Of a DNA stretch of 64,000 bases, positions 1 through 31,357 are shown one piece after another (within the stretch, counting starts at the first letter, position 1; every line of letters begins with the position of its first letter). The position numbers and the translations under genes were made by a program. Below the pieces are notes generated by a model. The model was not told where the DNA came from, made no database searches, and saw nothing but the letters and a program-made list of their open reading frames with translations. The DNA comes from Mobula hypostoma (Eukaryota), in contig NC_086110.1 of NCBI RefSeq assembly GCF_963921235.1, forward strand, positions 13,578,001-13,642,000, in the 5' to 3' direction.

Positions 1-260
1 TCTCATCCTCAGTAGGTTCACATTCCACGATCAACTCTGACGCCTGCTCATCAAATGTTCTCTTAGCTATATAATATTCACTATTTTTTCTTTGAATACC
101 TACCTTAGTCACACCCTTCTTTACATCAATTGTCAATTTTTTAGCAATATCCCGCAACTCATACGTTTTAGCTGACTTTCAAAGCACCAGATCTGGTGAT
201 TTCAGAAAGTCTCTACCTTCCATTTCTGCTGTCTTTCCACACAACCAAACCAAAAGTTTT
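1..260 (-). mobile_element. gag N-terminal fragment and leader of a second Gmr1-like LTR element copy (runs off the window)
   Basis: Aligns by eye to 4045-4290, the gag start of element A (e.g. cccgcaactcata, ctaccttagtcac). Confidence 0.8.
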
Positions 261-269
261 GTTATGTGG

Positions 270-5159: not shown

Positions 5160-5315
5160 CAATGAATATCAATCAATATTTATAACCTGTTCACTTAATG
5201 ATGATTGGAAATCTTATTTAGATAAATGGGGAACAATGGCCATACCATTTGTGACTCGTGTAAAATTGATCCATATGCTACAAAAGAGTAACTGTCTTTC
5301 AGCTGTGTACATCTT

Positions 5316-5873
5316 GTTCGTCCATCATTGACGTCGATGAGGACCTCGACTCCATTATGATGGTGTCGAGACTAGCGCGTGATTTGGATTTAAGTGAGGG
5401 AGAGTTGAGCAGCGTCAGCCTCACTTTCTCTTCCCAATTCCCATCTGGATCCAGTGGAAAGAGAGAATCTAGACGGCTGGAGATGGGACTAGGCTCAGTG
5501 GATGACCAGGACGTCTTCTGTGTCTTGTCCTGCTCTACACGTTCCACGACGCTTGCAGAGACCGCCTTCTTGACCGTTGGACCTTCCATTGGTCTCGTCC
5601 GCTCAATCCGCCGGAGTCTGTCTTCACATGCTGGGATAGACAACTCCCTATCTCACCGAGGGTTTGAGACCCGTCGGCTATCCTCACCTGGTTTAGCCGG
5701 CTTGTCGAAGCCGTTGCCCGGGGTGTGGCCACTGTCGCATCCAAACAGCTACGGGGAGCCACAGGTGAGAGCTGAGTGCCAGGTGGGGACCAAAGGTGGA
5801 CTAACCGCCCTGAAAAGGACGCGACATGTTCCCCCACAAGAGGTGCTACCCCTCCCTGACACCCCATACGCCT
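5316..5873 (-). mobile_element. Short non-autonomous retroelement (RTE-like 5' end suspected) with 12-bp TSD
   Basis: Flanking direct repeats tgtgtacatctt (5304-5315) and tgtgtccatctt (5874-5885), 11/12 identical; GC-rich body in AT-rich flanks; HDV-like ribozyme at its 5' end. Confidence 0.7.
5683..5865 (-). ncRNA. HDV-like self-cleaving ribozyme (predicted nested double pseudoknot)
   Basis: P1 GGGGUGU (5865-5859)/ACACCCC (5726-5720); P2 CUCACCUG (5769-5762)/CAGGUGAG (5690-5683); P3 GGC/GCC; L3 starts UCCCCGU; GGGCAA follows P1'; P4 CGGC-UUCGACAA-GCCG; J4/2 GCUAA with the catalytic-C equivalent at 5696. Confidence 0.8.
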
Positions 5874-6084
5874 TGTGTCCATCTTATCCCTGGATTCAAT
5901 GCATGGAAGCCAGCAACCGTCTAAATTGTAGCTGTCTAATGGTACTGCTGATTAGTTATCAACATGATAAGCACAAAGATTTAGAGATTTCAGTGGAAGT
6001 AATTTCCTCATATCATTTTCTGCATGTTTTGGCCATTAATATGACGCTATTAAGCAGAAATGCTTGCAGATCTATGTAAAACTA

Positions 6085-6570
6085 GACCACCTGTATTTAC
6101 GTGTGAACCTATTTCTCACTGGGACCAGATGCGATATACCCCGGACTACTGTGGACGTAAGGAAGTAGATCGTTGAGCCTCTGGTGATGATCTTTGTATC
6201 ATCAGTAGTGCATGAGAAGTCCTGGAAGACTGGAAGGTTGCAAATGTTGTTCCCTTGTTGAAGAAAGGGAGTAGCAATAACCCAGGAAATTATAGACAAG
6301 TGACTCTAAGTTCAGTAGCGGGCAAATTGTTGGAGAAAATTCTGAAAGGAAGGATTTATGAGAATTTAGAGGGACATAATCTGATTAACGATAGCCAGTA
6401 TGGCTTTTTCAAGTAAGGTTGTGCCTTACGAGCCTATTGAATCCTATGAGGATGTAACAAAACACATTGACAAAGTACAGCAATGGATGTAGTGTATACT
6501 GATTTCAGTAAGTTATTTGACAAGGTTCCCCATGTGAATCTCATTCAGCAAGTATTCCTACAGGCTGGGA
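6085..6570 (+). mobile_element. CR1 LINE RT fragment, degenerate
   Basis: Remnant RT N-terminal motifs (ANVVPLLKKGSSNNPGNYR; atttgacaaggttcccc, i.e. FDKVP). Confidence 0.8.
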
Positions 6571-6619
6571 ACTCAGGAAGATTTTGAACGGATTTCGCGC
6601 GTGTTAGAATTACCAGTGC

Positions 6620-8030
6620 CCCATTATAATCTTATTACAATTACAGCACGGAAACAGGCCATCTCGGCCCTTCTAGTCCGTGCCGACTCTTACTCTCACC
6701 TAGTCCCATCGAACTGCACTCAGCCCATAACCCTCTATTCCTTTCCAGTCCATATACCCATTCAATTTTACTTTAAATGACAACATCGAACCTGCCCGAA
6801 CCACTTCTGCTGGAAGTTCGTTTCAAACAGCTACCACTCTCTGAGTAAGGAAGTTCCTCCTCATGTTACCCCTAAATTTTTCCCCTTTAACTCTCAACTC
6901 ATGTCCTCTTGTTTGAATCTCCCCCACTCTCGATGGAAAAAGCCTATCCACGTCAACTCTATCTATCCCCCTCATAATTTTAAATTCCTCTATCAAGTGC
7001 CCTCTCAACAATCTACGCTCCAAAGAATAAAGACCAAACTTGTTCAACCTTTCTCTGTAACTTAGGAGATGAAACCCAGTTAACATTCTAGTAAATCTTT
7101 TCTGTTCTCTCTCAATTTTGTTGACATTTTTCTTATAATTCGTTGACCAGATCTGTACACAATACTCCAAATTTGGCCTTACCAATCCCTTGTACAATTG
7201 GAAAATTACATCCCAACTCCTCTACTCAATGCTCTGATTTATAAAGGCCAGCATACCAAAAGCTTTCTTCACCACCCTATCCACATGAGATTCCACCTTC
7301 AGGCAACTATGCACCAGTATTCCTAGTTCCCTCTGTTCTACTCCATTCTTCAATGCCCTACCATTTACCATGTATGTCCTATTTCGATTAGTCCTACCAA
7401 AACGTAGCACCTCACATTTATCAACATTAAAAGCCATCTGCTATCCTTCAGCCCACTCTTCTAACTGGCCTAAATCTCTCTACAAGCTTTGAAAACCCAC
7501 TTCATTGTACACAACTGCTCCTGTCTTAATATCACTGCATACTTACTAATCCAATTTACTACGCCACCATCCGGATCATTAATATATATGGCAAACAACA
7601 TTCGACCCAGTACAGATAGCTGAGGCACACCACTGGTCACTGGCCTCCAATCTGACAAACAGTTATCCACCACTACTCTCTGGCATCTCCCATTCAGCCA
7701 CTGTTGAATCCATTTTACTACTTCAATATTAATACCTAACGATTGAACCTTCCTAACTAACCGTACGTGTGGAACCTTGTTAAAGGCCTTACTGAAGTCT
7801 ACATAGACAGCATCCATCGCTTTACCCTTGTCAACTTTCCTTGCAACCTCTTCAAAAAATTAAATAAGATTTGTCAGACATGACTTTCCACGCACAAATC
7901 CATGTTGACTGTTCCTAATCAGACCCTGTCTATCTAGATAATTATATATATCATCTCTAGAAATACTTTCCATCAATTTAACCACCACTGACGTCAAACT
8001 CACAGGCCGATAATTGCTAGGTTTACTCTC
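6620..8030 (-). mobile_element. CR1 LINE 3' portion (RT and 3' UTR), decayed
   Basis: ORFs 7860-8057, 7470-7817, 7222-7437 and 6823-7197 carry NYRPVSLTSV, QHGF, DFSKAFNKVPH, GVPQ, LVRPNLEYC, LERRLLRG. Confidence 0.92.
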
Positions 8031-8470
8031 AGAGACTGTCCATTTTTTCAACACCATCTCCCTTTCAGAGGTTCATCTTGTATAGACGCAAAATTCATGG
8101 CATTGAATCCGTCCAACTATGCTGGCTTCATTGCTATCCATACTGTGGAGCAGCACACGGAGCATGCCGTGTTTCTCATTTGTATAGATTTTACTCGTAA
8201 GCCGCATAATTGACATCACTGAATTAGCTTTGTTTGTTTTTGGACCACAAATGGTTTTAGATCGAAGGATAACATATTCTGTGAATTTACTGAAGTGTTG
8301 CGTATGCTTTTTCCCATTCCCCAAAAGTTCTTTGAGAGCTGGTCAATGCAAACGATATTCATTAGTTATAAATATTGGTAGCTCTGTATTTGAACAACTG
8401 CTAGATAACCGATATCGGTGAAATATGGACAGGTATGCTTGTCTAAAAGAAGGCCGAAGAATAGGAGGAT

Positions 8471-8892
8471 TGTCGGGTTTTGTCGGGTTTCGGTGGGACT
8501 CTGGTGAATACTTGTTCACCGTTATTTATTAGGGAGCATAAAGGCAACAGTCTTTCAAAAACAGAAGGCAGGCACGAATCTGAAATGGCAGGCAGAGATC
8601 TTACCAGGAAAGGGCAGACAATCCAGACCGCACTAGCAAAAATCAGGTCCAGGAACAGGCAAAATCCAAAACACAGAATCAGGCAAAATCGGTTGGCAGA
8701 AGTCGCAATGACAGGCTATAACGACACAGGTCAGAATTGGGACGAACTGACAGAGAATGCTTGCCAAGGTAGGGTTTAAGTGGACAGGGTAATAAGTGAA
8801 AATTAGAAACAGGTGGGTGCAGATGAGGAGACAAGCGGGTAATTGGAGGAAGTCCAAAAAGGAAAGGGGCTGGGCCAGAACCCGCATGACCA
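8471..8892 (-). mobile_element. Probable solo LTR (Gypsy-type)
   Basis: TGT... start and ...CATGACCA end; CACCTG box and TTAAA on the minus strand; no TSD found. Confidence 0.45.
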
Positions 8893-8899
8893 GGTGAAA

Positions 8900-11800
8900 G
8901 AAAGCAGAAATTAAAGACTGCCGTGATCCAGAACGGAGAGGAGATACTGTGAGCCTGCTAGAGATACCCGCATGGTGTGCTGCCTCCCAGGTGCCAGGGT
9001 ACGAGATGTCTCGGATCGAGTCCTGAATATTCTCAGGGGGGAGGGTGAGCAGCCAATTGTCTTGGTACATGTTGGTACCAATTACATAGATAGGACAAAC
9101 GAGGAGGTCCTGAAGAGAGATTTCTGGGAGTTAGGAAGAAGCTGAGAAGCAGCACCTCCAGGGTAGTAATCTCGGGATTGCTACCTGTGCCACGTGCTAG
9201 CGAGGGCAAGAATAGTAGCATGAGGCAGATGAATGGGTGGCTGAGAGACTGGTACAAGGGGCAGGGCGTCAGATTCTTGGATAATTAGGATCTTTTCTGG
9301 GGGAAGTATGACCTGTTCAAAAAGAACGGGTTACACCTGAACCCGAAGGGGGCCAATATCCTGGCGGGAAAGTTTAATAGAGCTGTTAGGGAGGTTTTAA
9401 ACTAATTTGGCATGGGGGATGGGAACCGGAATGACAGTGCGGAGGAAGGGGAAAACAGAAATAAATCTAAGATTGTGAGCAGTAAAGATGTCGGGAAAGT
9501 CAGGCAGGTGATGGGGCAATGGGATGTTACTTAGGAAAATTCAGTCGCCCGGTATACATGGAGAGGTGGTAAATTGGATTAGACATTGGCTCAATGGAAG
9601 AAGCCAAAGAGTGGTAGTAGAGAATTGCTTCTCCGAGTGGAGGCCTGTGACTAGTGGTGTGCCACAAGGATCAGTGCTGGGTCCGTTATTTGTTATCTAT
9701 ATCAATGATCTGGATGATAATGTGGTAAATTGGATCGGCAAATTTGCTGATGATACAAAGATTGAGGGTGTAGTAGACAGTCAGGAAGGTTTTCAGAGCC
9801 TGCAGAGGGACTTGGACCAGCTGGAAAAATGGGCTGAGAAATGGCAGATGGAGTTTAATACAGACAGGTGTGAGGTATTGCACGTTGGAAGGACAAACCA
9901 AGGTAGAACATACAGGGTTAATGGTAAGGCACTGAGGAGTGCAGTAGAACAGAGGGATCTGGGAATACAGATACAAAATTCCATAAAAGTGGCGTCACAG
10001 GTAGATATGGTCGTAAAGAGAGCTTTTGGTGCATTGGACATTATTAATCAAAGTATTGTGTATAAGAGCTGGATTGTTATGATGAGGTTGTATAAGGCAT
10101 TGATGAGGCCGAATCTGGAGTATTGTGTTCAGTTTTGGTCGCCAAATTACAGGAAGGATATAAATAAGGTTGAAACAATGCAGAGAAGGTTTACAAGGAT
10201 GTTGCAGGGACTTGAGAAACTCAGTTACAGAGAAATGTTGAATAGGTTAGGACTTTATTCCCTGGAGCGTAGAAGAATGAGGGGAGATTTGATTGAGGTA
10301 TATAATATTATGATGGGTGTAGATAGAGTGAATGCAAGTAGGCTTTTTCCACTGAGGCAAGGGGAGAAAAAAACCAGAGGACATGGGTTAAGGGTGAGGG
10401 GCGAAAAGTGTAAAGGGAATATTAGGGGGGGTGGGCTTCTTCACACAGAGAGTGGTGGGAGTATGGAATGAGCTGCCAGGCGAGGTGGTAAATGCGGGTT
10501 CTTTTTTAACATTTAAGAATAAATTGGACAGATACATGGATGGGAGGTGTATGAATGGATATGGTCCGTGTGCAGGTCAGTGGGACTAGGCAGAAAATGG
10601 TTCGGCACAGCCAAGAAGAGCCAAAAGGCCTGTTTCTGTGCTATAGTTTTTCTATGGTTTCAATGGTTTCTGAATGTTTAGCCACTGGGATGCGTTGCTG
10701 TGCAATAAATTTGCAGTGAAATCAAAGCGAAAAGTAGCAAATACTGGTCTGAAGGTGTTATACTGAAATGCATGCAGCATAAGGAATAAGGTGGATGATC
10801 TTGTCGTACAGCTACAGATTGGCAGGTATGATATTGTGGCCATCACTGAGACGTGGCTAAAGGATGCATGTGCCTGGGAGAGGGGGAGGCGTAGCTTTAT
10901 TGGTAGGAAATGATATTAAATCATTAGAAAGAGGTGATATAGGATCAGAAGGTGCAGAATCTTTATGGGTTGAGCTAAGAAATTGCAAGGGCAAAAGGAC
11001 CCTGATGGAAGTTATTTAGAGGCCTCCAAACAGGTGCAGGGATGTGGACTACAAATTACAACAGGAAATAGAAAAGGCTTGTCAGAAGCGCAGTGTTATG
11101 ATAATTGTGGGGGATTTTAACATGCGAGTGGATTGGAAAAATCAGGTCGGCACTGGATCTCGAGAGAGACTTTGTAGAATGTCTGCGAGATGGCTTTTTA
11201 GACCAGCTTGTTGTTGAGCCCACCAGGCTGTACTGGATTGGGCATTGTGTAATGAACCGGAGGTGATTAGGGTGGTTGAGGTGAAAGAACCCTTAGGAGG
11301 TAGTGATTGAGTTCACTGTGACATTTGAAAAAGAGAAGCCGAAATATGATGTGTCGGTATTTCAGTGGAGTAAAGGAAATTACATGAGACAGGAACTGGA
11401 CAAAGTTGACTGGAAAGGGATACTGGCGGGAAAGACGGCAGAGCAGCAGTGGCTGGAGTTAATGCGAGAAGTGAGGCAGGTGAAGGCAGGTATATGGCAG
11501 AAAAGAAGAATTTTTCGAATGGAAAAAGGGTGCAACCGTCGTTGACAAGAGAAGTCAAAGCCAAAGTTAAAGCAAAGGAGCGAGCATACAAGGAAGCAAA
11601 AATTAGTGGAAAGACAGAGGATTGGGAAGTTTTTAAAACCTTACAAAAGGAAACTAAGAAGGTCATTAAGAGAGAAAAGATTACTATGAAAGGAAGCTAG
11701 AATATAATATCAAAGAGGATACTAAAAGCGTTTTCAAATATATAAAGAGTAAAAGACAGGTGAGAGTAGATATAGGACCGATAGAAAATGATGCTGGAGA

Positions 11801-13563
11801 GATTGTAATGGGGGATAAGGAGATGGAAGAGTAACTGAACGAGTATTTTGCATGAGTCTTCACTGAGGGAGACATCAGTAGTATACCGGACACTCAAGGG
11901 TGGCAGGGAACAGAAGTGTGCGCAGTCAAAATTACGACAGAAAAAGTACTCAGGACGGTGAATAGTCTAATGGTAGATAAATCACCCGGACCAGATGGAA
12001 TGCACCCAAGTGTTCTGAAGGAAGTAGCTGTGGAGATTGTGGAGGCATTAGCGATGATCTTTCAAAAGTCGATAGATTCTGGCATGACTCCAGAGGACTG
12101 GAAGATTGCAAATGCCACTCCGCTATTTAAGAAGCTGACAAGGAAGTAAAACGGAAATTATAGACCTGTTAGCTTGACATCGGTGGTCGGGAAGTTGTTG
12201 GAGTCGATTGTCAAGGATGTGGTTACAGAGTACCTGGAGGCGTATGACGAGATAGGCAGAACTCAGCATGGATTTCTTAAAGGGAAATCCTGCCTGACAA
12301 ACCTATTACAATTTTTTGAGGAAATTACCAGTAGGCGAGACAAGGGAGATGCAGTGGATGTTGTATATTTGGATTTTCGGAAGGCCTTTGACAAGGTGCC
12401 ACACATGAGCCTACTTAGCAAGATAAGAGCCCATGGAATTACAGGAGAGTTACATACGTGGATAGAGTCTTGGCTGATTGGCAGGAAACAGAGAGTGGGA
12501 ATAAAGGGATCCTATTCTGATTGGCTGCCGGTTACCAGTGGTGTTTCACGGGGGTCCATGTTGGGGCCGCTTCTTTTTACATTGAACATCAACGATTTAG
12601 ATTATGGAATAGATGGCTTTGTGGCTAAGTTTGCTGACGATACGAAGCTAGGTGGAGAGTCTGCAGAGAGACTTGGATAGATTGGAAGAATGAGGAGAGA
12701 AGTGGCAAATGAAGTATAATGTTGGAAAGTGTATGGTTATGCACTTTGGCGGAAGAAATAAACGTGCAGACTATTATTTAAATGGGGAAAGGATTCAAAG
12801 TTCTGAGATGCAACGGGACTTGGGAGTCCTTGTACAGGATACCCTTAAGGTTAACCTCCAGGTTGAGCCGGTAGTGAAGAAGGCGAATGCAATGGTGGCA
12901 TTCATTTCTAGAGGAATAGAGTATAGGAGTAGGGATGTGATGTTGAGGCTCTGTAAGGCGTTGGTGAGACCTCAGTTGGAGTACTGTGGGCATTTGCGTT
13001 TCCTTATTTAAGAAAAGATGTGCTGACGTTGGAGATGGTACAGAGAACATTCACTAGAATGATTCCGGGAATGAGAGGGTTAACATATGAGGAACGTTTG
13101 TCCGCTCTTGGACTGTATTCCTTGGAGTTTAGAAGAATGAGGGGAAACCTTATACAAACATTTCGAATGTTCAAAGGCATGGACAGAGTGGATGTGGGAA
13201 AGTTGTTTTCCATGATGGAGGAGTCTACTACGAGAGGGCATGACTTAAGGATTGAGGGGCACCCATTCAGAACAGAAATGCGAAGAAATTATTTTAGTCA
13301 GAGGGTGGTGAATCTATGGAATTTGTTGCCACGGGCAGCAGTGGAGGCCAAGTCATTGGGTGTATTTAAGGCAGAGATTGATTGGTGTCTGCGTAGTCAG
13401 GGCATCAAATGTTATGGTGATAAGGCGGGGGAGTGGGACTGAATGGGAGAATGGACCAGCTCATGATAAAATGGCGGAGCAGACTCGATGGGTCGAATGG
13501 CCGACTTCTGCTCCTTTGTCTTATGGTCTTATGGTCTTATGGTCTTATGGTCTTATGGTCTAT
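8900..13563 (+). mobile_element. CR1 LINE (ORF1 esterase end, endonuclease, RT, 3' microsatellite tail), interrupted by a second CR1
   Basis: ORF1 remnant MVCCLPGARVRDVS (about 8970-9010); endonuclease remnant 10760-11300 (IVAITETW, VGDFN); RT ORFs 11916-13442; tail (TTATGGTC)x~5 at 13520-13563. Confidence 0.9.
9511..10672 (+). mobile_element. 5'-truncated CR1 (RT C-terminal half) nested in the host CR1
   Basis: ORF 9524-10471 (GVPQGSVLGP, KFADDTK, RPNLEYC); 3' tail tttctatggtt; host sequence resumes at about 10676. Confidence 0.9.
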
Positions 13564-13649
13564 CACTGGGACATGAATACTGCTTGTGGCACTGGTGTAC
13601 TTGCATGATCTCATCGTGTTTGCATCAACACTGGAGGAGCATGAGACGT

Positions 13650-15950
13650 GACGATTTATGTGTCAGGCCACCTGAAAGCGGAAGGATTAAAACTCTCACT
13701 GGACGAGTTCCTGTTCTTCAGCCGTCAGTGATCTATGTCATTCACATAGTCTCCCCGAATGGAGTGGCTACGGATCCCGGGAAGATATAGGCGGTAACCA
13801 CGTGGCCAAGGCCCAAGAATATGAGTGTCGCATGCTCATTCCTTGGATTCTGTGGGTACTACCAGAGATTTCTGAAGAGCCACTCCAGAGCAATCCATCA
13901 GTTGGATGAACTTCTATATGGTTACCCTCCTTTACTGAAGGAAGGTATGGAACAAAGGCAAAAGAAGGCAAGGTTTATTTTAGCTCTTTGGAGCCTTTAG
14001 AGGAAAGATGTGATGCAAAGTGCGAAGAGGCATTTCAGTTGTTGAAGAGTTATTGACTAAAACACCCTTCCCTGCCTTTGCAAACAACCAGTTGCCGTAT
14101 CTATTGCACACAGATGCCAGCCATGATGGATTAGGCGGGGTTCAATATCAAGATGAAGGTAAAGAGGCTTTTGCTTTCGTTAGCTGGTGTTTGGCACCAA
14201 CGGAACGAAACATCCCTGCACACAAATTCGAGTTTATGGCACTGAAATGGGAAGTGTGGGGGGGGGGTGAAATTAAGTGAATATCTGGTGCTAAATTCGA
14301 GGTTAGGACCAACAACAATCCAGTGACTTATATTCTCACTTCGGAGAAGTTGGATGTCATAGGTTATCGTTGGTTGACGGCGTTGTCTGCTTATGATTTC
14401 TGCCTTGCATATCGGCCTGGAAGTGAGCAATGATGCCGGTGCGTTTTCTCCAAGTTCTCATGAAGTGCCGGTAACAGACTGAGAGTGGGACGACGCTCCT
14501 GCCTCTGCTGTTGAAACAGTATGCCAGTTTTCCACAGCTGGAAAATCAGAGCACAGACTTTAGCCTGATAGAGCTGTTCGTTATTTGAGAGCTTGGATCC
14601 ATGCCATTCCCCAAGTATATTACAACTTTACCGCGCTGAATACGAAGAAGCTTCCTGCATTGAGTACTTCGGAACTGGCAGCAGCTCAGCAACACGACCC
14701 TTGTAAGGGTATGATCTGGTCATCTCTTGTGAAAGCCGATATGAATCCAGTTGAGAAGACAAAATACCCTGCCATACCCCTACCCACGAAGAAATGGGAC
14801 AAACTGGAGTTGAGGAACAAAGTTTCACACACTGTTCCATCTCCCCAGATAGACCTCGGCTTTCCCAGTTGCGTTTCCCTGAAAGAAGTATCCGATGATA
14901 GTACTGAAGTCACTTCAGGTCATTTGGGATTTGGCAAGACCTACGGATTGGTCCAATTTCGGTTTTATTGGACACAAGTGAAGCCTGGCGTTGAGAAGTA
15001 CTGTACGGCGTGCATCCAATGTATTCGGAGGAAGACTCTGCTTAATAAACTTGTCTATTAGACGCTGCCACTATCTCATTTACAAAGAACTGGACCACTT
15101 GACTTCGCGTGCATGGAACCTGATTCCAGTAACACTCCGAATGTCTTGGTCATCACGGTCTAATACACGTTATATGCTCAAGCGTTGTCCTCTTACGATC
15201 AGAGAGTATACACCGTTGCCAAAAGGTTATAGGATCAGTATATTATTCATTATGGCCTCCCGAGAAGGATGCATAGTGACCCGGGAAGGGATTTTGAGAG
15301 CCGGGTCATGTATAAGTTACGCAGTATGCTTGGATTTGAGAGGTCAAAGTCGACGCCATGTCACTCTCAAGGTGATCCTCAGCCCAAAGTTGAAAAGGAC
15401 ATTGCTAGACGTGCTTGGGACCCGAGATGCCAACAGAAGGAGAAAGTGGGGACAACATATTGGACATTTGTTACACTGCTACAACTGGACACAGAATGAA
15501 AACAATGGCTACTGGCCATACTATTTGATATTCGGACACAAAGCGAGGTTACTTGTAGACGGTTGGTTTGGAACCGCTGGGGTGGGGTGGGGCTTTCCGC
15601 AGAACACGTATCTCAAGTATGTATCTGACGTGAGAAAAGAAATGTGAAAAAGCCCTAGTAGCAGTTTCTGCTACCAAGCAAAACCAGGGAACATTCGAAG
15701 AGATATGGTCAAAGCATCATGCTCAGCCACTTGATGCCTGGACAAAGAGTTCTAATAAGAAATTTGGGATTACAAGGGAAGCATAAGTTTGCCAAACACT
15801 GGGTTTCTACGCCTTACGTAGTGGAGAGCCAGATGCCAAATTTGCCGGTTTTCCAGGTGAAGCCATGGTCCTGTCCATTTTCTTCATTAGCGCCATATTT
15901 TACCACAAGGGCAATAAGAACATGTTAGCCCAGAGTCTGACATGGAGCCT
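13650..15950 (+). mobile_element. Canonical-order Ty3/gypsy pol fragment (RT end, RNase H, integrase), decayed
   Basis: GVATDPGKI, FLGFCGYY, LHTDASHDGLG, then GHLGFGKT..FYW..C..C (integrase zinc finger) and HSDPGRDFES; integrase follows RNase H. Confidence 0.88.
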
Positions 15951-16100
15951 AAACCAAATAGTAAACTCTGCTCAGCAGGAGAACAGAAAGGCAACAAACT
16001 GACAATAGTGTGATTTCAGCGCAAATTCATTAGAGTTTTGTGATACAAATAATGATTTGATAACTTACTAAAGTTTATAACGTCATGAGGACATGACTAC

Positions 16101-17121: not shown

Positions 17122-17423
17122 CAGTTAACAGAATAGTCGAGAGCCGCTTTTATTTCCGAAAATAAAATGTTGCTGGAATTTTTACTTGACGGCAACAGAC
17201 TCCGAAGTCTGCGATACTAACATTCAGGAGGATAAATGTGCCCTTGTTATTCTTTACATTGAACCACTGTTTTCTGCTGACTGGTTCTATAAATGTCCCC
17301 CACCCCCGCCCAAACGAAACTTCAGCAATATTCTGTCGAATTGGAAATTTGCAGAACATGTATGCTGTTCCACCGATTGAGATGTTTAAGATTGGAAGGA
17401 CTGTTCCACTTTGGCCGAAGTTA
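17122..17423 (-). pseudogene. Decayed germline-joined VJ exon of paralogue 3
   Basis: Phase-1 acceptor reads TSAKVEQS, then a frameshift into ILNISIGGTAYMFC..VSF..FIEPVSRKQWFNVKNNKGTFILLNVSIADFGVCC, colinear with the intact V (FLESDSRKQFSLEKTRGTLVLLDVKFADSGIYYC); J-like FGNKSGSRL; 302 nt. Confidence 0.8.
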
Positions 17424-17630
17424 CTTTTGCAGTTCATAAAGCATAAATGAGAGTGATGAAAACAGTTGCATCCACTGGACAAATAACTCAGCAGACTAAG
17501 TAGGAAGAAGAAAGAAGAAACGACAATATTAGAATTGAATGTGTGCGATGGCCTAAGTTGCAGTGTAAATAATGTATAATATTATAACATCGGCTTAGCT
17601 CCAAACCATTAGCACAATAATTAATTGTAC

Positions 17631-17682: not shown

Positions 17683-18260
17683 CTGTAACTTTAAGGAAAT
17701 AAAACGAAAAGAGGCGTTTTATGTTTAATGGAAACTGTAACATGTTTTATTGAACACATCACCTACAAACCAAAGCGGACTAACACTCTATGTGTGATAA
17801 CGTCGTCACTACGGAGCAGCCCATTAAAGTGAAATCCCAACCCAAAAACGTTACCCTTCACAAAGCCTCCCCACCCCAACCCCCACAATGAGCCTACTGT
17901 CGGAATGGGGCCACACTCAGTTTCCAGAGTTGTTGTATAGCAGTTACCTTCCGGTTAAGTTTGTCTTTTGTTTACTTTTCACTAGTATTGAGCAGAGTTA
18001 AATAAATGTTAGCAACACACACCAAAGTTACTGGTGAACGCAGCAGGCTAGGCAGCATCACTAGGAAGAGGTACAGTCGAAGTTTCGGGCTGAGACCCTT
18101 CGTCGAGACTAACAGCAGGAAGAGCTAGTAAGAGATTTGAAAGTGGGAGGGGGAGAAGGAGAACCAAAATGATAGGAGAAGACAGGAGAGGGAGGGATGG
18201 AGCTAAGAGGTGGACAGATGATTGGCAAAAGGGATATGAGATGATCATGGGACAGAAGGC

Positions 18261-18690
18261 CCATGATCCTCTCATATCCCTTTTGCACCTGTCCCATGAT
18301 CCTCTCATATCCCTTTTGCCCCTGTCCCATGATCCTCTCATATCCCTTTCGCCTCTGTCCCATGAACCTCTCATATCCCTTTTGCCCCTGTATCATGATC
18401 CTCTCATATCCCTTTTGCCCTGTCCCATGATCCTCTCATATCCCTTTTGCCCTGTCCCATGATCCACTCATATCCCTTTTGCCCCTGTCCCGTGATCCTC
18501 TCATATCCCTTTTGCCCCTGTATCATGATCCTCTCATATCCCTTTTGCCCTGTCTCATGATCCTCTCATATCCCTTTTACCCCTGTCCCATGATCCTCTC
18601 ATACCCCTTTTGTCGCTGTCCCATGATCTTCTCATATCCCTTTTGCCCCGGCCCATGATCCTCTCATATCCCTTTTGCCCCTGTCCCATG
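18261..18690 (+). repeat. 33-bp minisatellite, about 13 copies (cccatgatcctctcatatcccttttgcccctgt)
   Basis: ccatgat recurs at 18261, 18294, 18327 and onward. Confidence 0.95.
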
Positions 18691-18820
18691 ATCAACTCCT
18701 ATCCCTTTTGCCAATCACCTGTCCAGCTCTTGGCTCCATCCCTCCACCTCCTGTCTTCTCCTATCATTTTGGATCACCCCCTCCCCCTCCCACTTTCAAA
18801 TCTCTTACTAACTCTTCCTT

Positions 18821-18863
18821 CAGTTAACCCTGACGAAGGGTCTCGGCCCGAAACGTCGACTGT
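18821..18863 (+). ncRNA. Minimal type-I hammerhead ribozyme motif of a Penelope terminus
   Basis: CUGACGA, stem II GGG..CCC, GAAAC, GUC cleavage triplet; stem I weakened; the inverted copy (about 18075-18112) has a mutated core (UCGACGA, UUC). Confidence 0.65.
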
Positions 18864-19799
18864 ACCTCTTCCTAGAGTTGCTGCCTGGCCTGCTGCATTC
18901 ACCAGCAACTTTGATGTGTGATGCTTGAATTTCCAACATCTGCAGAATTCCTCCTGTTTACGTTAATAAATGTTACGTTTGTTTATTAAACCTGACTCAC
19001 TTCTATATTCATTTCTGCTGATGACATAACAATCCTTTCACGCTTGGAATGCTGTCAGTCATCGATATGGTTTAAGATTAAAACTTTAAACTCCGTTTCA
19101 TTTCATATTGTTATGAAACCTCTCATTTTTTCTCTTTCCGGAAAGCACACGTCGTAGAATCGCAAACAATTATATCACAGAACACATTAGAAACATTCAG
19201 TTGCGAGGAAGAGGCTTGGAAGTTAATTTATGGAGAAATAATCCATTGTCTGTAACCTAAATGTTGAGCTTTAAAAAAGGCCAAAACTTCGCAATTTGAT
19301 TTTTGAGACAAATGTAAATTTTTACCACAAACGCTTTCAATGATATCATCAGCGGGCACGTTAGTGCATTTCCATGCTCTGCTATTTCTAATTTCCTGAT
19401 AACCTGCACGAGGAGTTCGTTGTAGATTTTTAGCTGAAAGAAACATTGAAGCCTGGAATGCATCACGGAAGAGGGCTCTTCCACCCCTGTCATCCACCCC
19501 TGTCATCCATTCTGAACAAAACATTTGCGTAGCCTTTCTTTTATCTGCCTCCAGCACGGTACCACTTACTCTAACAGCTTGTTCTATATACCTACTATCT
19601 TCTGTCTGAAAACCGTGCCATTCCCAGTTCCTCCTTAAATATTTTCTCTTCCAGTTCACAGCTATGTTTCTAGATTTGGATCCCCTGTATTGAGAAATCG
19701 ACTATGAGCATCTCGTATGTTAATGTCCGTAACAATTGTGTGTGTTTTTTTTTTCCACATTCATAAGGTAATCACTCAGTCACCTGTACTCCGGGTGTC

Positions 19800-20140: not shown

Positions 20141-20159
20141 GGTTGGAATAAAATAACCA

Positions 20160-20470
20160 GCTTACCATATAAAAGTTACAGCAAGGAAACAATCCATCTC
20201 GGCCCTTCTAGTCCGTGCCGAACTCTTACTCTCACCTAGTCCCACGGACCTGCACTCAGTATATAACCATATAACAATTACAGCACATAAACAGGCCATC
20301 TCGGCCCTTCTAGTCCGAAAAATATTATGTTTGCACCATAATGTTAAGTTCCCTGGGATACTCCGGTTTCCTCCTACACTCCAAAGACTTACGGGTTAGT
20401 AGTTTAGTTCGTCACATGGGCACATGGGTGTGATTAGGCGGTGTGGACTTGTACTGGAAGGCCCTGTGTT
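20160..20470. repeat. Two CR1 3'-end fragments plus a SINE body fragment
   Basis: catctcggcccttctagtccg occurs twice (as at 6660); ctccggtttcctcctacactccaaagac is a SINE-core-like tract. Confidence 0.55.
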
Positions 20471-20998
20471 CTATTGCTAAAGCAAATCTATATCTTAAGC
20501 ACGCTGATCTCTCTGCTTTACCAGATAATAGCTAATGCACTCTTCCTGCTATCGATCTTTGCGAAATTCTTTGCTCTCCCTCTGGTTTAGTGAAGCAAAG
20601 GCAGTGGTGTGCTCAAACGGTGCTTGTTCAACCTTTTGGAAAATTATATTTAATATAGCTAACTGATAGAGAGCTCAGGGATCATACACTAAATTATGTA
20701 AAAATCCAAACACTAAGGATAAAAAAAAATGTTGGAGTAACATTTTGTCTGCACACAATCATACTGTCCATACATCAAACCAGAGGTGGGATATCGACCG
20801 TTTCAGGGTGGAAGTCGCTATGTTAACTTCAGATTTTCAAACCACCGGCTGTAAGAATCGTACGGATAGGATGGGGTTCTCAGTTCTGGCCATCTCTTTT
20901 ATTTCATCTACTAATTCCTATACCTTACGCCCCACGAGGTTATGTACATGGACATCATACAATGTTCCACCTCTTATGCATGCGTCGAATTATTGTAA

Positions 20999-21174: not shown

Positions 21175-22247
21175 CTGGTAAATCACTTAAATTACGATCG
21201 AAGTACGTACAGTAAATGGACGTAGTAGTTACAGTAAATGAATAAAATGGCATTTGTTTTGGCTAAAATTATGTCATAGCGTTTGATAGAAAAATGTAAT
21301 GGTAAAAATTTAATCATGAATGCTTCAGCTTCAACTTGATATCACTCTAAGAGGCACCCCTACATTTCCGGAAGTGTTACGAACACTGGTAGAAGATTTA
21401 GTGGAATTCTATATAATGAAATCGGTGATGTATGTATGACTACCCTGTCTTAGTTACTGCAGTCTCTTCATTTGCACCTAAAGACGTGACGTGAAATTAA
21501 AACTAATTGCATCAACCTGGAGAAAGTGACTAATGAAACACAAGAAGAGAAATGTTATCAGGTAGGGAAAATTTAATAAGATTGAAGTACTGGAAACCTG
21601 AAATAAAACAAAGAAATGGAAGACACAAAACTTTAGTTGATCAGGAACCACCAGTTAAAGAGAAGCAGTTAACGTTGTATTCTGGCGAATGGTCTTCAAT
21701 CTGGAATGTCAGCTGGTTCTCTTTCCAAAAATGCCGTCAGTAGCTACCGATTGTTTTCTGTTTGAATTCCAAATGGGAAAAGGCAATACTTTTATCCGTT
21801 TTCGGTATTTCTTCCCAAATTGAGGATAATGATCATTCAGCATAGCATCGTGGACCAGAAGATGCCATGTGCAGTTTCATTTAACATGTGGTTATCATTG
21901 TTCACCACATACTACAGCGTTTTGTTGCAAGTATATTCGATTCCATTGCAGGTTATGCACTGCTGTGTGGATTTTCGTTGCGGATCGGCGTTAAAACTGC
22001 ATGTAATATTGCAAAGACCAGTTCAACAAAACATTACGTCGTTGCATTTTTTTTATCTTGTTTACTATCCGTTGAGATTAAATGTAGCAGACATTACGAA
22101 TTGATTTGAGAACGCACTGTACTTTCCCATTGTGCAGTAAACTGTGATTCTCGTAAACTAGCATCTACTAGTTTCTCGCAGTCTCAGATGTTTGTTTAAT
22201 TATTCGCCAAACTATGTTACCTTCCACTGGGAAACATTACCGCTCAC

Positions 22248-22282
22248 CTTCCAATGCAACCGCTTACGAACTGGCGTGGAAT
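22248..22282 (-). CDS. Candidate cytoplasmic mini-exon (DSTPV, or DSTPVRKRLHWK)
   Basis: Acceptor cttcctgtgttctttcaag; alternative donors GTAAGC (exon ends 22268, phase 1) or GTGAGC (ends 22248, phase 0). Confidence 0.45.
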
Positions 22283-22426
22283 CTTGAAAGAACACAGGAA
22301 GCAGATGCAACGGGTACATTCAAATAAATCATGGATATATACTTGAAAATAGTTTTAAATTTTCCTGCTACGCTCCAAAGTTTTATGGAATAAAATAGAT
22401 TCATAATATCTATGCTATGCGTGTAC

Positions 22427-22504
22427 CCTGCTCTGAAACAAGACGAGTCACGGCATCTACCGGGTCTTCATTCTGACATCCGGCCAAATAATTTGTGTTA
22501 CGCC
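22427..22504 (-). CDS. Candidate cytoplasmic exon (GRNTNYLAGCQNEDPVDAVTRLVSEQ)
   Basis: Strong polypyrimidine acceptor tttctttttgttttcttttctgaag; open in phase 1-1; 78 nt; weak donor GTACAC. Confidence 0.5.
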
Positions 22505-23482: not shown

Positions 23483-23587
23483 CGTGCGATCTCTTTCTCT
23501 TCAGCGAAGTTATTATCAGAACTAAAATTGCCAATCCGCCGACTGCACATGTAAGAATTAATCTAAGATCAGCGCCTTGTAGATCTA
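23483..23587 (-). CDS. Transmembrane exon of the VJ-C1 receptor (VDLQGADLRLILTCAVGGLAILVLIITSLKRKRSH)
   Basis: Acceptor tttgtttcctccag, donor GTAAGA, phase 1-1, 105 nt; hydrophobic stretch of about 22 aa followed by basic stop-transfer KRKR. Confidence 0.9.
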
Positions 23588-24846
23588 CTGGAGGAAACAA
23601 AGAAACCGTGAAGCATTTATACATCTGAAAACCAATCGACACGTGAGAATCAAAAATGCAGAGCATTTTATAAGCTCCCTTCAAAGCTCCCTACACAACG
23701 ATGGGAAAACAGAACATATTAATGACAGAATATACAATATAGAACAAAGAAATCTGGTGTTTAGTTTCTCGAGACACACGCGAGAAATTTACTAAGACTA
23801 TGAATAGACTCGGCTGCATCTTCCTTTACTTCACTTGACAATAGTTATCAGCACAACTATTGAACGTGTAAACATCAACCAAATACGATTCTAATCACGA
23901 TTCAAACGGTTAAATCATGTCTGTCAAGAAGATTTCTCAGTACGATCAAAACCTAAAGAGAACTCGTAGGAGTCCCGGTGCAGCAACAAATCGCTTCCGC
24001 ATTACATGCTGAAATTCCTCGCTAACTCTATGAGTTTAACACTGTATCCTCTAAGCCTCCTGAATGTGTATCGAGCATATTAAACATATTTTCCCACTGT
24101 TATGGTTTCCACAGGTTTAGGAGTGACAATCCTGAATTCATAGAAAACTGTTTTAATGAAAACATAGACCAAACTCCAGTCATTCATTTGAATTGTGTTG
24201 CCTACTATTATTGGAAGGTAATTACGCAGAGACTAAATTTTGACAAAATCTGTCCACAGTTTCGCTCCCTATGCATTCGGTCCAGGTGGCAATTAAGTGT
24301 CACGCCTCAGTGTTCAGGAATTCCTATTTTGATTCTGATTTTGCCCCAAAAAAAAACTATGTCAATGAAGTACACCTTTGCTCAACAGCAGGTGGTTTCC
24401 CCCCATTGTTATATCATCATGCAATTCAGAGTTTACGTGTAGCTTTGCTTCATCTTTGACTAATGTCCAGAATTTTGTTACCTTACAAGTACAACACGAA
24501 TTTAATTTCTTAATTCACCCTACACGATGTAAACTGAGGGTAAAAGAAATTTGATTTAAAAACCATTCACATTAAATGTTCACTGCAAACAAGTAATCTT
24601 AAAATTTCTCCCTTCTTCCGTGTTCGGATAGCTGTTCAGTGCCTGTTCTTAAGCAGATTTGATCTATCCAGCTCTATCATTTGCGAACGTTTCCAACTTG
24701 CCCGGAACGCTAGAGTTTCTGAAAGTGTTGAAAATTCAGAGTAGCACACAAAATACTGAAGGTACGCAGCAGATCAGGAGAGGAATAAAGTAACGAGGTT
24801 TCGGTCCGAGATCTGATATCGGGACGCAATCAAGATACCATCTTAC

Positions 24847-25140
24847 CTTGCTCCAGGATGTGGCTGAAACAGGCAGGCACTGTGAGGGAGACATGCAACA
24901 CCAGACAGATGTAAACATCTTTTCCCCAAGCAGACTGATTAATTTCCAATAAACTGTAAGCCTCATATAAACCCTCCGCCGTCCGGTTAATATCTGTTTT
25001 TATTCCAGTGAGAATTTGCCTGTTATTCGTTTGCCAGACGATTTGTAATTCCTTCGGGTAGAAGGCAGCTGTTTTACAAAGGAGTTTCCGAGGAGACGAA
25101 AACTCTGCAATAGGAACGATTTCCAATGGAGTTGGGGGAG
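24847..25140 (-). CDS. C1-set Ig constant-domain exon
   Basis: LLCKTAAFYPKELQIVW, EGLYEAYSLL, YICLVLHVSL; acceptor ctctttttattcaag, donor GTAAGA, phase 1-1, 294 nt, no stops. Confidence 0.93.
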
Positions 25141-26229
25141 CTTGAATAAAAAGAGAGTTATATTGGGTGTTACCATCCATTTAGTTCAAATAAATTCCTT
25201 TATCTTCCCGTCAATTACAATGACATCTCACTATCAAATTAGTTACCCGCCATAGGCTCCCAGCATTTTATAAATTATTTTAAGTTCAAGTTCAAGTTCA
25301 TAGTTAATAAACCACACAGATGTACATGGCTAAATGAAACATCCTTCTTTATACTTTATACTTTATACTATATACTTTATTGTCTTCTGGGGTCAACTGC
25401 AAAATGCAGTCCATGTATTCACACACAGCACGTGCAGTCACCATCCGGCAGATCCAGTGAAAAATAAACGAATCAAAATCGAGGCACCGTGCAGAGACAG
25501 ATGAAAGGAAAAATTCGAAGAAGGCACAGAAAAGGCGAATCTAAGGGGTGAGAAGTGAGAAAGACATTCCTTTTTGAATGGTCTTTCAGCTTTATCACAT
25601 GATTCTGTTTGCGGCAGCGTGTAAGTTTTGGAAAATATTCCTTTCTGTATTTTTTTTTCATTTCCAATTAAATCTGAACGATAAGACCTAAAATATTACA
25701 GATGTCCACACTCCGGACGCAAGAAGCTCTTGCACATTGGCAACTCATTTGTTCAGGTTGTTGTTCAGAGCTTACGTTGGAGCTTTCCAGTCATCAACAT
25801 TCACTGATAGAGTTTTCCTCGGAATGTATATCATTGCTAGAAAATTTCTCCCGCATATAATGTGTTGAATGTGGCAAATCCTACCCTCCATGAAACAACT
25901 AGGAACGGAAAAGCGGAGATGATATTAACCGCATTTATTCTACATTTCTGTTCTTTCATAAACCTGTCGGTCTGCAGCAAAATGGTCGAAAATGGCCTGA
26001 CACTGCTATACGAACGATGGTGCCCTGCAGAGAGGCAACCGAGGAGCTGAACGAGCTTCGCTTCTCCCTACAGAGATTCCACTGAAAGATAAGCCCAAAA
26101 TTCACGATTTTGTAAACTTGGACTGCTTCCGCTGCAACTATGGTCCGTATCTAACTTAGGAAAGGCTATTTTCAGATTGCTTTATCAATATGTCACAACA
26201 TTTAGCATTTTGCCCTGCCTATAATGGCC

Positions 26230-26930
26230 ATCCTGAGTTCACGGTTACCCCCACAGCACTGCCATGGTCCATATACAGATGACAGATGTTTATGTGCTTG
26301 TTGTCGTGAGGCAAATTAGTTTGTATAAATCCTCATGGCTCGAGATGGAGTCCCATCTGAAATCTTGGGAGGCTCGTGCATAATTTGAAGGTGCCTTGAT
26401 AGAGGTATTCAAAATATCCTGACCCACGGGTGAGAAGCCGGAAGACTGGATATGATTAATGTTTTGTAGTTGTTCAAGAAAATATCTAAGAAGACGCCGG
26501 GATCTTTTAGGTTGGTGAGACTGACGATTGTAAATTGTAACTTGTTGGCAATATTACAAGTGACAGGATACATAACTATTTAGATAGAAGTTCCAATAGC
26601 CATCAAGATTTTGTGCATGGTAAGTAGTGTCAGGCTTATCTTAAAGCGCTTTTCGAGGAGTTTACCAGAGATCATGTTGAAGGAAATGCAGGGGATGTTG
26701 TCTACATGGCAATCCCTTAGGCAAAGTCCGTAATGAGAGGCTGATCAAGAAGGTTCGGTTGGAATTCAGGATGAAGTGGTAAACTGCATTTAACATTGGC
26801 ATAGCGGGAAAGCCAGGGAGTGGTTGTAGACGGCTTCCCTCTGACTGGAGGCCTATAACTAGAGGTGTGCCGCGGGGATCGGTGCTGGCTACGTTGATAG
26901 TTCTTAATTAATTTTTTATGACAATGGATT
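26230..26930 (+). mobile_element. Old degenerate CR1 RT fragment in intron 2
   Basis: Remnants such as gactggaggcctataactagaggtgtgccgcggggatcggtgctg (WRP.T.GVP.GSVL). Confidence 0.65.
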
Positions 26931-27773
26931 AAACTGGTTCAGAATTTTTTTCAGATCTGCACAGTGGGTAACAAATGCAGACAGCTGTAAAATGGGCTGT
27001 AAAATGACAGCTGGAATTCATTCGCTTTCAAATTCCATTCGTGCTCAGCTCTCTACCCTTTACATTATAACCCTATCAAAATTCATCTCGATATTACGAT
27101 TTCTATTTCTCTCCCTATTTTGAATGGGGAAAGAGGTATAGATAGTCAGAAGTTTTGCAAAGCACATTTGGATTGACAATTTGCAGCGCGTGCGACAAAT
27201 AGATACATTATATTGCTATTAATTCTTTTGGATCTGGGTGAGTTTGCAACCTTGACATCCTATAAGAGAGTAGATAAAATTGTTCATGATTTGCCTCATG
27301 TGTGATCGGAAATCGAGCTTTCCAACTACAGCCACTCACATTAGTAACAATATTATTTTAACATCTTGCCTGCAAAGCAAATATTACTTCACTTGAAAAT
27401 TAATTCCTTGTTTTTGAAGCACCTTCCCGATGATAATGCTAAAATCGAAGGGCATCACTAACCTTGGACATTAGCTTTAAATTGGAGATTGCCGATCGAT
27501 AGGTCTGCACTAACAGCAGTTGTAAGGAGTACGATGCAACAAACAGAATCAGCGTTATTTCTCGCCCAATTGACGCTGCCTAAAAATGTATTTATTTTGT
27601 TCTGTTCTTTTTAACTCTACAATTGGAGCTTGTAGAGTGGGATTTGCTTTAACGCGTGAAACAAATCCACTCTCGCTTTTTGTTTTATCAAATAGTAACA
27701 TGACATATTAATCTCATCATTAGCTTTAATTTAAATTGCACAAAAGCGAAAATCTCCTCGCAGCCGCACTAAC

Positions 27774-28079
27774 CGAACACAGTGAGCTTGGAGCCACTTC
27801 CATTCCAGAATGATTGTTCCCGATACTTTGCTCCACAGTAGTAAATTCCGGAATCGGCGAATTTCACATCCAGCAGAACAAGCGTTCCTCTTGTCTTTTC
27901 GAGACTAAATTGTTTTCTGCTGTCACTTTCTAAAAATGCATTCTCGCCTTCCCTCCACCAAAGAAAGCTAACAGTATCTTTTGATATTTGAGTATTGCAG
28001 TGCAAGGTAACATTCGTCCCGCCCGGAACGTCCAAGTCCGTAGGGAATTGATATACTCTGAACGCAAGCACTTCGACCG
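27774..28079 (-). CDS. Germline-joined VJ-type Ig variable-domain exon
   Basis: VTLHC (B-strand Cys), FLWWRE (Trp), DSGIYYC (F-strand), J-like WNGSGSKLTV all in one exon with no RSS; acceptor ttttttcgccggcag, donor GTTAGT, phase 1-1, 306 nt. Confidence 0.95.
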
Positions 28080-28289
28080 CTGCCGGCGAAAAAAAACAAG
28101 AGCATTAATAACAGCTACACACAGGGAACAAATAAGAACCTAAAGACATACTGTATGTTACCGGATAACGAAGAGACAAAGACGACCGAATTGCTCAACC
28201 GCTGAAACTAGGTATGCAGCGGGAACCCAGGTTTAAATTTTCTAAAATAGAATACTCAGTTCAGAAACGGAACATTTAAGTTAGCATAC

Positions 28290-28344
28290 ATAGACAAGTA
28301 ATAGCCAGGAGCGCCATGTACGAAACCGTAAATTTCTCTGACAT
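28290..28344 (-). CDS. Leader (signal peptide) exon MSEKFTVSYMALLAITCL
   Basis: ATG at 28344, hydrophobic core, phase-1 donor GTATGC that joins in frame to the V exon; 210-nt intron. Confidence 0.85.
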
Positions 28345-28849
28345 ATTACAGAAACCGAACCGAGCAATTTTGGGATACAAGTGATATTCTGAAGAGTTTG
28401 TGGAAGGAATAGAAATTCAAGGGTAAATATATGAACCGTGTAATCATGACGTATGATGACGCCTCAACAAGACAGAAGCAGGTGTTTCAAAGATCCTTAT
28501 ACTGGGCAGACAGGGCAGTGAGATCTCTTCCCTTTTCAATTGTTAAAGGACTATCTAGTGCTTTCAAAATTATGTTCGGATTTTGTGCACTATGCTGAGT
28601 TCAGGAATTATCCATTTCTTTATTTCGAACTAAATTCAGATCTGTGCTCTGCCAAGTAATTCCAAATAAGGAAATCCGCATTGTAGTCATAAATATCTAA
28701 TAAAATTTGCGGTTTTGAATTGGATGGGTAAGATGGCACTCGCGACCAATGCGACTAACGGCCAATTCGTGCAAACGTTCACGATTTTTTTCTTCGTCTT
28801 TTCCTTCTTTAAAAAGCATTTTAAAAGTTATTAATGTGTGCGCGACTGA

Positions 28850-30779: not shown

Positions 30780-31357
30780 GCGAAAGCAGTAAAGACTCTG
30801 ATTATCATGCCGATCACCGCCCTATTTTGAGTAGTTATACATCTGGAATTGCCACGATTCGGCGAGGACGTTGCTCTGTTTTCATTGGCACGTTATCGCC
30901 ATCATATAATTGCATCTCCTGCCCTCTCAGAAATGAAATCTTTTATGTGTATCGAGCGTCAGGTTGTTCACAGTAACACGCATTTAGTCCAGTGGATCCC
31001 ACTGGATGTAATTAAGTTCGGGTTGTTGAGGAGTTTGTCGAGGAGAGTATGAATCAATGCTCAGCTTCCATGTGCTTCCGACGTTCAGAGTCAATATTCT
31101 GATTTCCATGCGAATCACCACGCCATTTTGCCCAGTTATGTATTGGGAATTTCCACGAATCGTTTGGGATGTTATGCTACTTTCATGGACACACTGCGCC
31201 ATCATTGAATTCCATCTGATGTCCTCTCAGAATTGAAATCGATTGCAGAAACACATATCCCTGTCCATTGGCACAGCTGGATGTAATTGAGTTGGGGAAG
31301 TTGAGGAGGTTGGCCGGATGAGGACACCGACTAAGTTAATTTTATCCCGCTGCGGAT
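30780..31357 (-). pseudogene. Tandemly duplicated (about 300 bp) decayed cytoplasmic-tail exon with ITIM-like LNYIQL / LNYIQW
   Basis: Matching anchors about 300 bp apart (30801/31102, 30845/31146, 30898/31198) and 275 bp apart (31002/31277); acceptor cttacacttcatccag just before 31357; both copies interrupted by stops. Confidence 0.5.

Follow-up and report, generated by a model that had tools for sequence, protein, structure and literature searches.

The locus described here lies in a 64,000-nucleotide stretch of the genome of the lesser devil ray, Mobula hypostoma (contig NC_086110.1, positions 13,578,001 to 13,642,000; hereafter the window, from whose first letter all coordinates are counted), where one gene on the minus strand encodes a leader, a germline-joined variable domain (VJ), a C1-set constant domain, a transmembrane (TM) helix and a short cytoplasmic tail. 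We read the window sequence, translated the spliced exons and compared the resulting gene model with assembled RNA contigs (Table 1). The initial annotation had described four GT-AG exons, all in phase 1, and had named the absence of transcripts with these junctions as evidence that would speak against it. The borders and phases of the leader, VJ, C1 and TM exons are as described, and contigs of RNA run X1, from the same organism, contain all three junctions (28079|28290, 25140|27774 and 23584|24847, with CT..AC ends on the plus strand). Two details changed. Splicing into the TM exon uses the TAG of a CAGTAG tandem acceptor, at 23584 and not at 23587, which lies 3 nucleotides (nt) further in than was thought and leaves one valine fewer in the protein. 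In addition, a fifth coding exon had been missed. An X1 contig extends 38 nt past 23482 and its loose end maps uniquely to 22474-22503, behind an ag acceptor; because the contig continues in this way, the GT at the end of exon 4 is a used donor and the fifth exon begins at 22504. Its frame runs through 31 codons to a TAG at 22412-22410. Since X1 contigs also cover 21980-22421 and 21647-21811, with a depth of zero in all introns, we take this exon to be terminal, with a 3' untranslated region (UTR) of at least 760 nt. The leader is split, its final residues being encoded in the V exon, and the first intron measures just 210 nt (28080-28289). The product of 283 amino acids (aa) thus comprises the split leader, the VJ domain, the C1 domain, a stalk, the TM helix and a tail of 37 residues (KRKRSH plus the 31 of exon 5). 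The locus is a five-exon transcribed gene for a type I membrane protein, which is presumably displayed at the cell surface.

Table 1. Exons of the VJ-C1 gene and the decayed exon downstream of it, in window coordinates (CDS, coding sequence)
Feature	Position	Strand	Details and support
Exon 1	28290-28381	minus	At least 37 nt of 5'UTR plus leader CDS 28290-28344; ATG at 28344; donor GTATGC; ends in phase 1; X1 contig joins it to 28079
Exon 2, germline-joined VJ, 102 aa	27774-28079	minus	Donor GTTAGT; Pfam, family V profile, RNA junctions on both sides
Exon 3, C1-set	24847-25140	minus	Donor GTAAGA; Pfam, family C1 profile, RNA junctions
Exon 4, stalk, TM helix LRLILTCAVGGLAILVLIITSL and KRKRSH	23483-23587	minus	RNA acceptor 23584; donor GT at 23482-81
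Exon 5, terminal	21647-22504	minus	CDS 22410-22504, encoding GRNTNYLAGCQNEDPVDAVTRLVSEQGTRIA and stop, then at least 760 nt of 3'UTR
Relic of the first inhibitory-motif-bearing cytoplasmic exon	20521-20632	minus	tblastn with tails of relatives, sequence, translation

The domain types of the product resemble those of antigen receptors. Exon 2 matched Pfam V-set at 9.5e-10, with Ig_3 and I-set close after, above the curated cut-off, and exon 3 matched Pfam C1-set at 3.7e-10 (40.4 bits against a cut-off of 21). The V domain is short, lacks a C'' strand and ends, within its own exon, in the J-like G strand that had been noticed earlier (WNGSGSKLTV, with the J-like GSGSKLTV and an N-G-S sequon); the C1 signatures AFYPKELQIVW and YICLVLHVSL are likewise present. 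A motif scan for heptamer-spacer-nonamer sites resembling recombination signal sequences (RSS) gave no match in the gene or in the rest of the 64-kb window, in agreement with the initial annotation. A rearranging V segment or a pseudogene of an immunoglobulin (Ig) or T-cell receptor (TCR) is ruled out, given the absence of an RSS from the window and the direct splicing to C1 of a V exon that already has a J-like strand. Exons of the grade described below for the family number exactly one V and one C1 in the window, and its C1 hidden Markov model (HMM) detected no second C1-like exon anywhere in the window. In AlphaFold2 the V domain was modelled with a pLDDT (predicted local distance difference test) score of 89.7 and the two domains together with 89.3, in an extended arrangement with a D strand in the second domain.

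We then gathered the relatives of this gene by an exhaustive HMMER search with the C1 exon and by word-indexed searches with the best match and with family profiles, which retrieved more than 60 proteins of the same V-C1 layout from rays, skates, sharks and a chimaera. The rays and skates are Mobula hypostoma, M. birostris, Hypanus, Hemitrygon, Pristis, Amblyraja and Leucoraja; the sharks belong to eight genera (Heterodontus, Scyliorhinus, Heptranchias, Mustelus, Hemiscyllium, Chiloscyllium, Stegostoma and Carcharodon), and the chimaera is Callorhinchus. There are dozens of paralogues per genome. The boundary of the family is sharp. Against HMMs built from 57 members, the C1 domain scored at least 88 bits for every member versus at most 58 for everything else retrieved, and the V domain at least 63 bits for every member, down to Callorhinchus, versus at most 34; the window product scored at family level (V 129.9 bits, C1 139.3 bits). 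The conserved columns include both cysteine pairs, a WW after strand C, DxGxYxC, a G-N-G-T-G-S-x-L-x-V G strand, a PPTP linker, FYP...W and C.V.H.SL, and the invariant residues among them (the cysteine pairs, WW, DxGxYxC, GxG, PPTP, FYP, W and the C1 histidine) are all present in the window product. The J-like strand, GxG(S/T)xLxV, is nearly invariant across the family.

No family member from a bony vertebrate was found in the word-indexed and family-profile protein searches, where the highest scores from outside the cartilaginous fishes were 73 bits for an ordinary Ig kappa chain, 59 for a NITR of zebrafish and 58 for a TCR-beta of a teleost. The window gene is thus a member of a multigene family that, within these searches, appears confined to cartilaginous fishes. 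The suggestion that the family might be uncharacterised fared well in part. Sequence and fold searches revealed no one-to-one orthologue of a well-characterised gene, and our literature search found no paper describing the family, the likeliest overlapping papers (on PRARP, shark NCR3 and B7H6/NKp30) lying outside that search. The UrIg2 paper (PMC12227049) and the shark major histocompatibility complex (MHC) paper (PMC10751288) mention neither the family nor SIRP. On the other hand, the gene is one of dozens of paralogues, and members have already been predicted in RefSeq under inconsistent names: SIRP-alpha-like, SIRP-beta-1-like, NCR3LG1 (B7H6)-like, Ig lambda-like, PD-L1-like, CD276-like, TCR-beta-like, MHC II-like and tapasin-related-like. 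Most similar to the window product is XP_062923618.1, also from M. hypostoma, at 93% identity overall. A contig of a further run, X2, covers the C1 exon at 24846-25140 with 6 differences from the window, two of which turn threonine into lysine (QKNN) as in XP_062923618.1; because of these differences, the near-identical paralogue is taken to be transcribed too, in a different sample.

The members differ most in their signalling ends. Some have long tails with two to four [SIVLT]xYxx[ILV] motifs, some have short motif-free tails, one clade has a lysine-rich tail, and there are isoforms with no TM helix. About half of the members carry such motifs, which correspond to immunoreceptor tyrosine-based inhibitory or switch motifs (ITIM or ITSM; e.g., TAYASLN, LTYAALQL and TLYADVNT). 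By translation, the 31-residue end of the window product has no ITIM, ITSM or immunoreceptor tyrosine-based activation motif (ITAM), and the product cannot carry the inhibitory motifs of its family. Exon 5 is nevertheless the homologue of the exon that opens the cytoplasmic part in the long forms (..NT.SL..CQNE[ED]P), and it retains an unused-looking donor, CCG|GTAGAT (22460-59), at the very point from which the ITIM-tailed relatives continue splicing. About 1.8 kb downstream of the stop codon we found the decayed remnant of the exon that follows in those relatives (Table 1). It has kept its ag acceptor and a GTAAAG donor, its ITIM tyrosine has become phenylalanine (TAFASLN) and it contains an in-frame TAG; its similarity to the tails of P0178, P0157 and P0004 in tblastn ranged from E 3e-10 to 5e-7, and no RNA depth was seen over it in X1. 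The gene had been called intact, which is true of its open frame and spliced transcript; its ancestral ITIM tail is lost, with the decayed exon still lying downstream. A further trace of tail variation is found in the 3'UTR, where 22203-22286 is, by tblastn, a copy of the alternative last exon used by the short-tailed M. birostris gene model P0151.

The history of the tail can be followed in a maximum likelihood tree of the ectodomains, in which the window product groups with four Mobula proteins with an SH-aLRT (Shimodaira-Hasegawa-like approximate likelihood ratio test) support of 98. One of these four, M. birostris XP_072135231.1 (P0178, 346 aa), has a complete four-tyrosine ITIM tail. At least nine changes of tail state fall on well-supported branches of the tree, a count in which some of the short states are possibly truncated models. 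The identity of the window product to its relatives is mosaic. Its V and C1 domains are 98-99% identical to those of XP_062923618.1 versus just 76% for the TM exon, and its TM segment best matches that of the short-tailed P0151 (29/32). Such a mosaic is the pattern expected of paired receptors, in which ectodomains are kept alike as the signalling ends diverge. Judging from these sequence comparisons, the copy appears to descend from an inhibitory form by loss of the tyrosine-bearing exons.

From these observations, we regard the locus as a five-exon VJ-C1 gene that is probably a short-tailed copy of an inhibitory ancestor and a non-inhibitory partner in a paired-receptor system. An inhibitory ancestor would have lost its tyrosine-bearing exons with the ectodomain retained; given that descent and that loss, the copy would most likely share its ligand-binding surface, and presumably its ligand, with its inhibitory siblings without recruiting SHP-type phosphatases. 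It could then serve as the non-inhibitory partner, decoy or activating. Several points weigh against this reading of the copy. The RNA support consists of low-depth contigs (~4-6x) from a single run of three, of unspecified tissue, and 22422-22466 is in no listed X1 contig; the continuity of exon 5 there is deduced, which leaves room for rare onward splicing. Some of the short-tailed members on which the comparison of tail classes draws may owe their short tails to truncated gene models. The protein collection searched does not contain the exact window product, and RefSeq may treat the locus differently. Lastly, the arginine in the TM helix, to which we return below, has counterparts in ITIM-tailed relatives.

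The low RNA depth in one of three runs is also what would be expected if the locus were a signalling-dead decoy or a gene being lost, that is, a truncated receptor that competes for ligand or does nothing useful. The decay of the ITIM exon, a motif-free tail whose single tyrosine is not conserved in the closest paralogue, and the frequent tail changes in the tree, which suggest birth-and-death turnover, all fit with it. However, the five exons all have open frames and are spliced correctly, and a TM segment of this short-tail type persists in M. birostris, an argument that it has been retained since the divergence of the two species. We consider this possible, at clearly lower probability than a working paired-receptor partner.

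A slightly less likely alternative is that of an activating receptor, in which an arginine at the outer end of the TM helix would pair with an acidic residue of an ITAM adaptor (a homologue of FcR-gamma, DAP12 or CD3-zeta) and ligand would trigger the cell. Precedents for an adaptor-pairing arginine are Fc-alpha-RI, GPVI, NKp46 and SIRP-beta. In the window product an arginine stands two residues into the predicted helix, of which it is the sole basic residue, above a short motif-free tail, and the near identity of the ectodomain to relatives whose lineage includes an ITIM form is the classic arrangement of paired receptors; other short-tailed members have an arginine deeper in the helix (e.g., IFRSALGG and LIYRSILG). 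The arginine of the window product, however, aligns with the lysine or arginine of a DTK/DTR motif in ITIM-tailed relatives and is thus a family-wide juxtamembrane feature, not one specific to activating forms. Because of this alignment, the TM segment has no specific mark of adaptor pairing, and the case for an activating role of this particular copy is weak.

We compared the product with known receptors by domain, by V and C1 together and by shape. With the V exon alone against single-domain chains of the PDB, the closest sequences among the matches listed were CD79b (phmmer 8e-8) and TCR V-alpha; NKp30 was absent from the V matches listed. A fold search with the V model placed CD79b at rank 1 both in the Swiss-Prot models and in the PDB, at 28-30% identity, followed by CD8-beta, Ig light-chain, TCR and IgNAR V domains, and no B7 member or NKp30 was among the best 30 Swiss-Prot or the best 50 PDB matches. 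In the sequence searches of the PDB, multi-domain antibodies, titin and contactins took up the matches listed, ranked by summed score. The domain-by-domain sequence comparison with the PDB took in, among the matches listed, Ig lambda, UrIg2 and SIRP-alpha only, and the family profile scored them at an effective tie: Ig lambda V-C 74.7 bits, SIRP-alpha V-d2 70.3 (d3 48.5) and UrIg2 V-C1 67.8. In shape, the two-domain model had a TM-score of 0.75-0.82 to SIRP-beta and SIRP-alpha models and of 0.43 to Ig light and TCR-beta chains, which bend at an elbow; in the Foldseek search of this model, B7s, CADMs and TAPBPR were intermediate in superposition, all at E ~1e-13. These comparisons together indicate that the domain types are antigen-receptor-like and the overall build SIRP-like.

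The same comparisons bear on two further readings. The first is that the protein is a ligand of the B7H6/B7 type and not a receptor, for which one could cite the automatic RefSeq names (NCR3LG1-like, PD-L1-like and CD276-like) and the top ranks of CD276, PD-L1 and B7H6 in the two-domain Foldseek search. The V domain alone, whose best fold matches contain no B7 at all, points elsewhere, as do the nearly invariant J-like strand and the receptor-typical ITIM/ITSM tails of the siblings, and we regard a ligand of this type as very improbable. A B7H6 orthologue in particular is ruled out, the V type being wrong. The second is that the product forms one chain of a dimer resembling the T-cell or B-cell receptor, its C1 domain and an extra cysteine pairing it covalently with a second family member as a germline hetero- or homodimer. 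C1 domains usually pair, the last C1 strand of the product has an extra cysteine that is specific to its subfamily (PACFSH, versus PASFSY in other members), and the nearest V domains are those of CD79b, which forms disulfide-linked dimers, and TCR V-alpha. Against a dimer speaks the extended, SIRP-like shape of the monomer model, with its much lower score to Ig light and TCR-beta chains. We think such pairing improbable, yet not quite so improbable as a B7 ligand.

The initial annotation had proposed a TCR-chain-like innate receptor of a cartilaginous fish. The non-rearranging VJ-C1-TM organization is borne out, and the best functional analogue is a paired receptor of the SIRP type. SIRP genes share with this family a non-rearranging V with a J-like strand followed by C1-set structure, as well as paired multi-ITIM and short-tailed members, and SIRP is the best structural match of the two-domain model. 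SIRP proteins are V-C1-C1, whereas the window gene has a single C1, as do most members of its family; one skate member (P0024) is V-C1-C1. Moreover, the family V is shorter, without C'', and closest to CD79b, and the sequence score to SIRP is no better than that to Ig lambda or UrIg2. NKp30 (NCR3) differs in having a single VJ, no C domain and a TM arginine, whereas the window gene splices in a C1 exon; a V-only isoform of a sawfish family member (P0228) is named NCR3-like by RefSeq. CD79b has a short, J-bearing, non-rearranging V, the nearest single V by both sequence and fold, but it has no C1 domain and carries an ITAM. With Ig light and TCR chains the gene shares the V(J)-C1 layout, the phase-1 exons and the split leader with a short leader intron; unlike them, it lacks RSS and does not keep V and J as separate segments, its modelled geometry is extended and not elbowed, and its family consists of many genes for receptors fixed in the germline.

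Among elasmobranch genes, UrIg and UrIg2 (Flajnik et al. 2023; 2025, PMC12227049; PDB 9dmx) are also non-rearranging, with a single-exon VJ and a split leader before their C1 domains, and UrIg2 (9dmx) was among the best PDB sequence matches, at a general V/C1 level only. UrIg, however, has three C1 domains and is secreted, and UrIg2 has nine to eleven C1 domains (PMC12227049). The V-C1 score of UrIg2 (67.8 bits) compares with more than 220 for true members of the VJ-C1 family, and UrIg and UrIg2 are without a paired ITIM/short-tail organization. As neither the number of C1 domains nor the scores fit, membership of the window gene in UrIg/UrIg2 is ruled out. The long-tailed members of the VJ-C1 family have the same architecture as PRARP, which was compared by description only.

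Non-rearranging VJ-C1 genes are material for reconstructing the RAG-invaded ancestor of antibodies and TCRs, and the usual candidates for relatives of that ancestor are UrIg, UrIg2, NKp30, SIRP and PRARP. The PRARP genes are said to have been reported, in the 2019 work of Fu and colleagues, from bony fishes to birds. Germline VJ-C1 paired receptors of the SIRP-like or PRARP-like kind are already known, and the window copy adds a new member to them. What it adds is an RNA-confirmed representative of a further large family, specific to cartilaginous fishes in our searches, that stands in databases only under contradictory automatic names. It is also a clean example of an inhibitory receptor that appears to have become tail-less, with a near-identical ectodomain, a swapped TM segment and an ITIM exon decaying in place. 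Alone, it is one paralogue among many, and its value is in defining and naming the family and in placing it relative to Ig/TCR, CD79b and SIRP. Conceivably, the VJ-C1-TM family could have survived as a side branch of the pre-RAG lineage of antigen receptors, a germline-joined membrane sister of Ig/TCR chains and CD79b and not an offshoot of SIRP or B7. We hold this to be doubtful, with only a small chance of being correct; if it were true, the paired ITIM and short-tailed members would show what receptor signalling was like before the CD3 and CD79 adaptors took over.

About 6 kb downstream of the gene, on the minus strand at 17153-17581 (core 17198-17389), lies a degenerate V-like exon of the same family, which scored 30 bits against the family V HMM over HMM positions 14-90 only, reads VCC in place of YYC and has no J-like strand. 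No C1 exon to match it was found at E <1, and a second C1 exon belonging to this pseudogene is rejected at that threshold. No RNA depth was seen over the V-like exon. Upstream of the gene, at 30984-31327 on the minus strand, two adjacent short open reading frames (ORFs) contain PQLNYIQL and PELNYIQW; a family tail was ruled out there, as tblastn with eight family tails gave no similarity. No conserved single-copy neighbour gene usable for synteny is present in the window. The stretches 1-16000 and 34000-64000 consist mostly of retroelement debris on both strands (ORFs resembling reverse transcriptase, gag/integrase and long interspersed nuclear elements). Within the latter, 52949-54354 is made of ~1.3 kb of tandem repeats that are open in several frames on both strands, with ORFs of 338-417 aa built of periodic SWSLAAGSSRLGFLELGCGIFEAW-type units, and is probably a satellite or a transposon-internal repeat and not a gene. 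At 18000-19000 and 20150-20350 the RNA word depth reached thousands in each of the three runs and odd joints were numerous, as is typical of expressed dispersed repeats; this signal is not part of the VJ-C1 gene.

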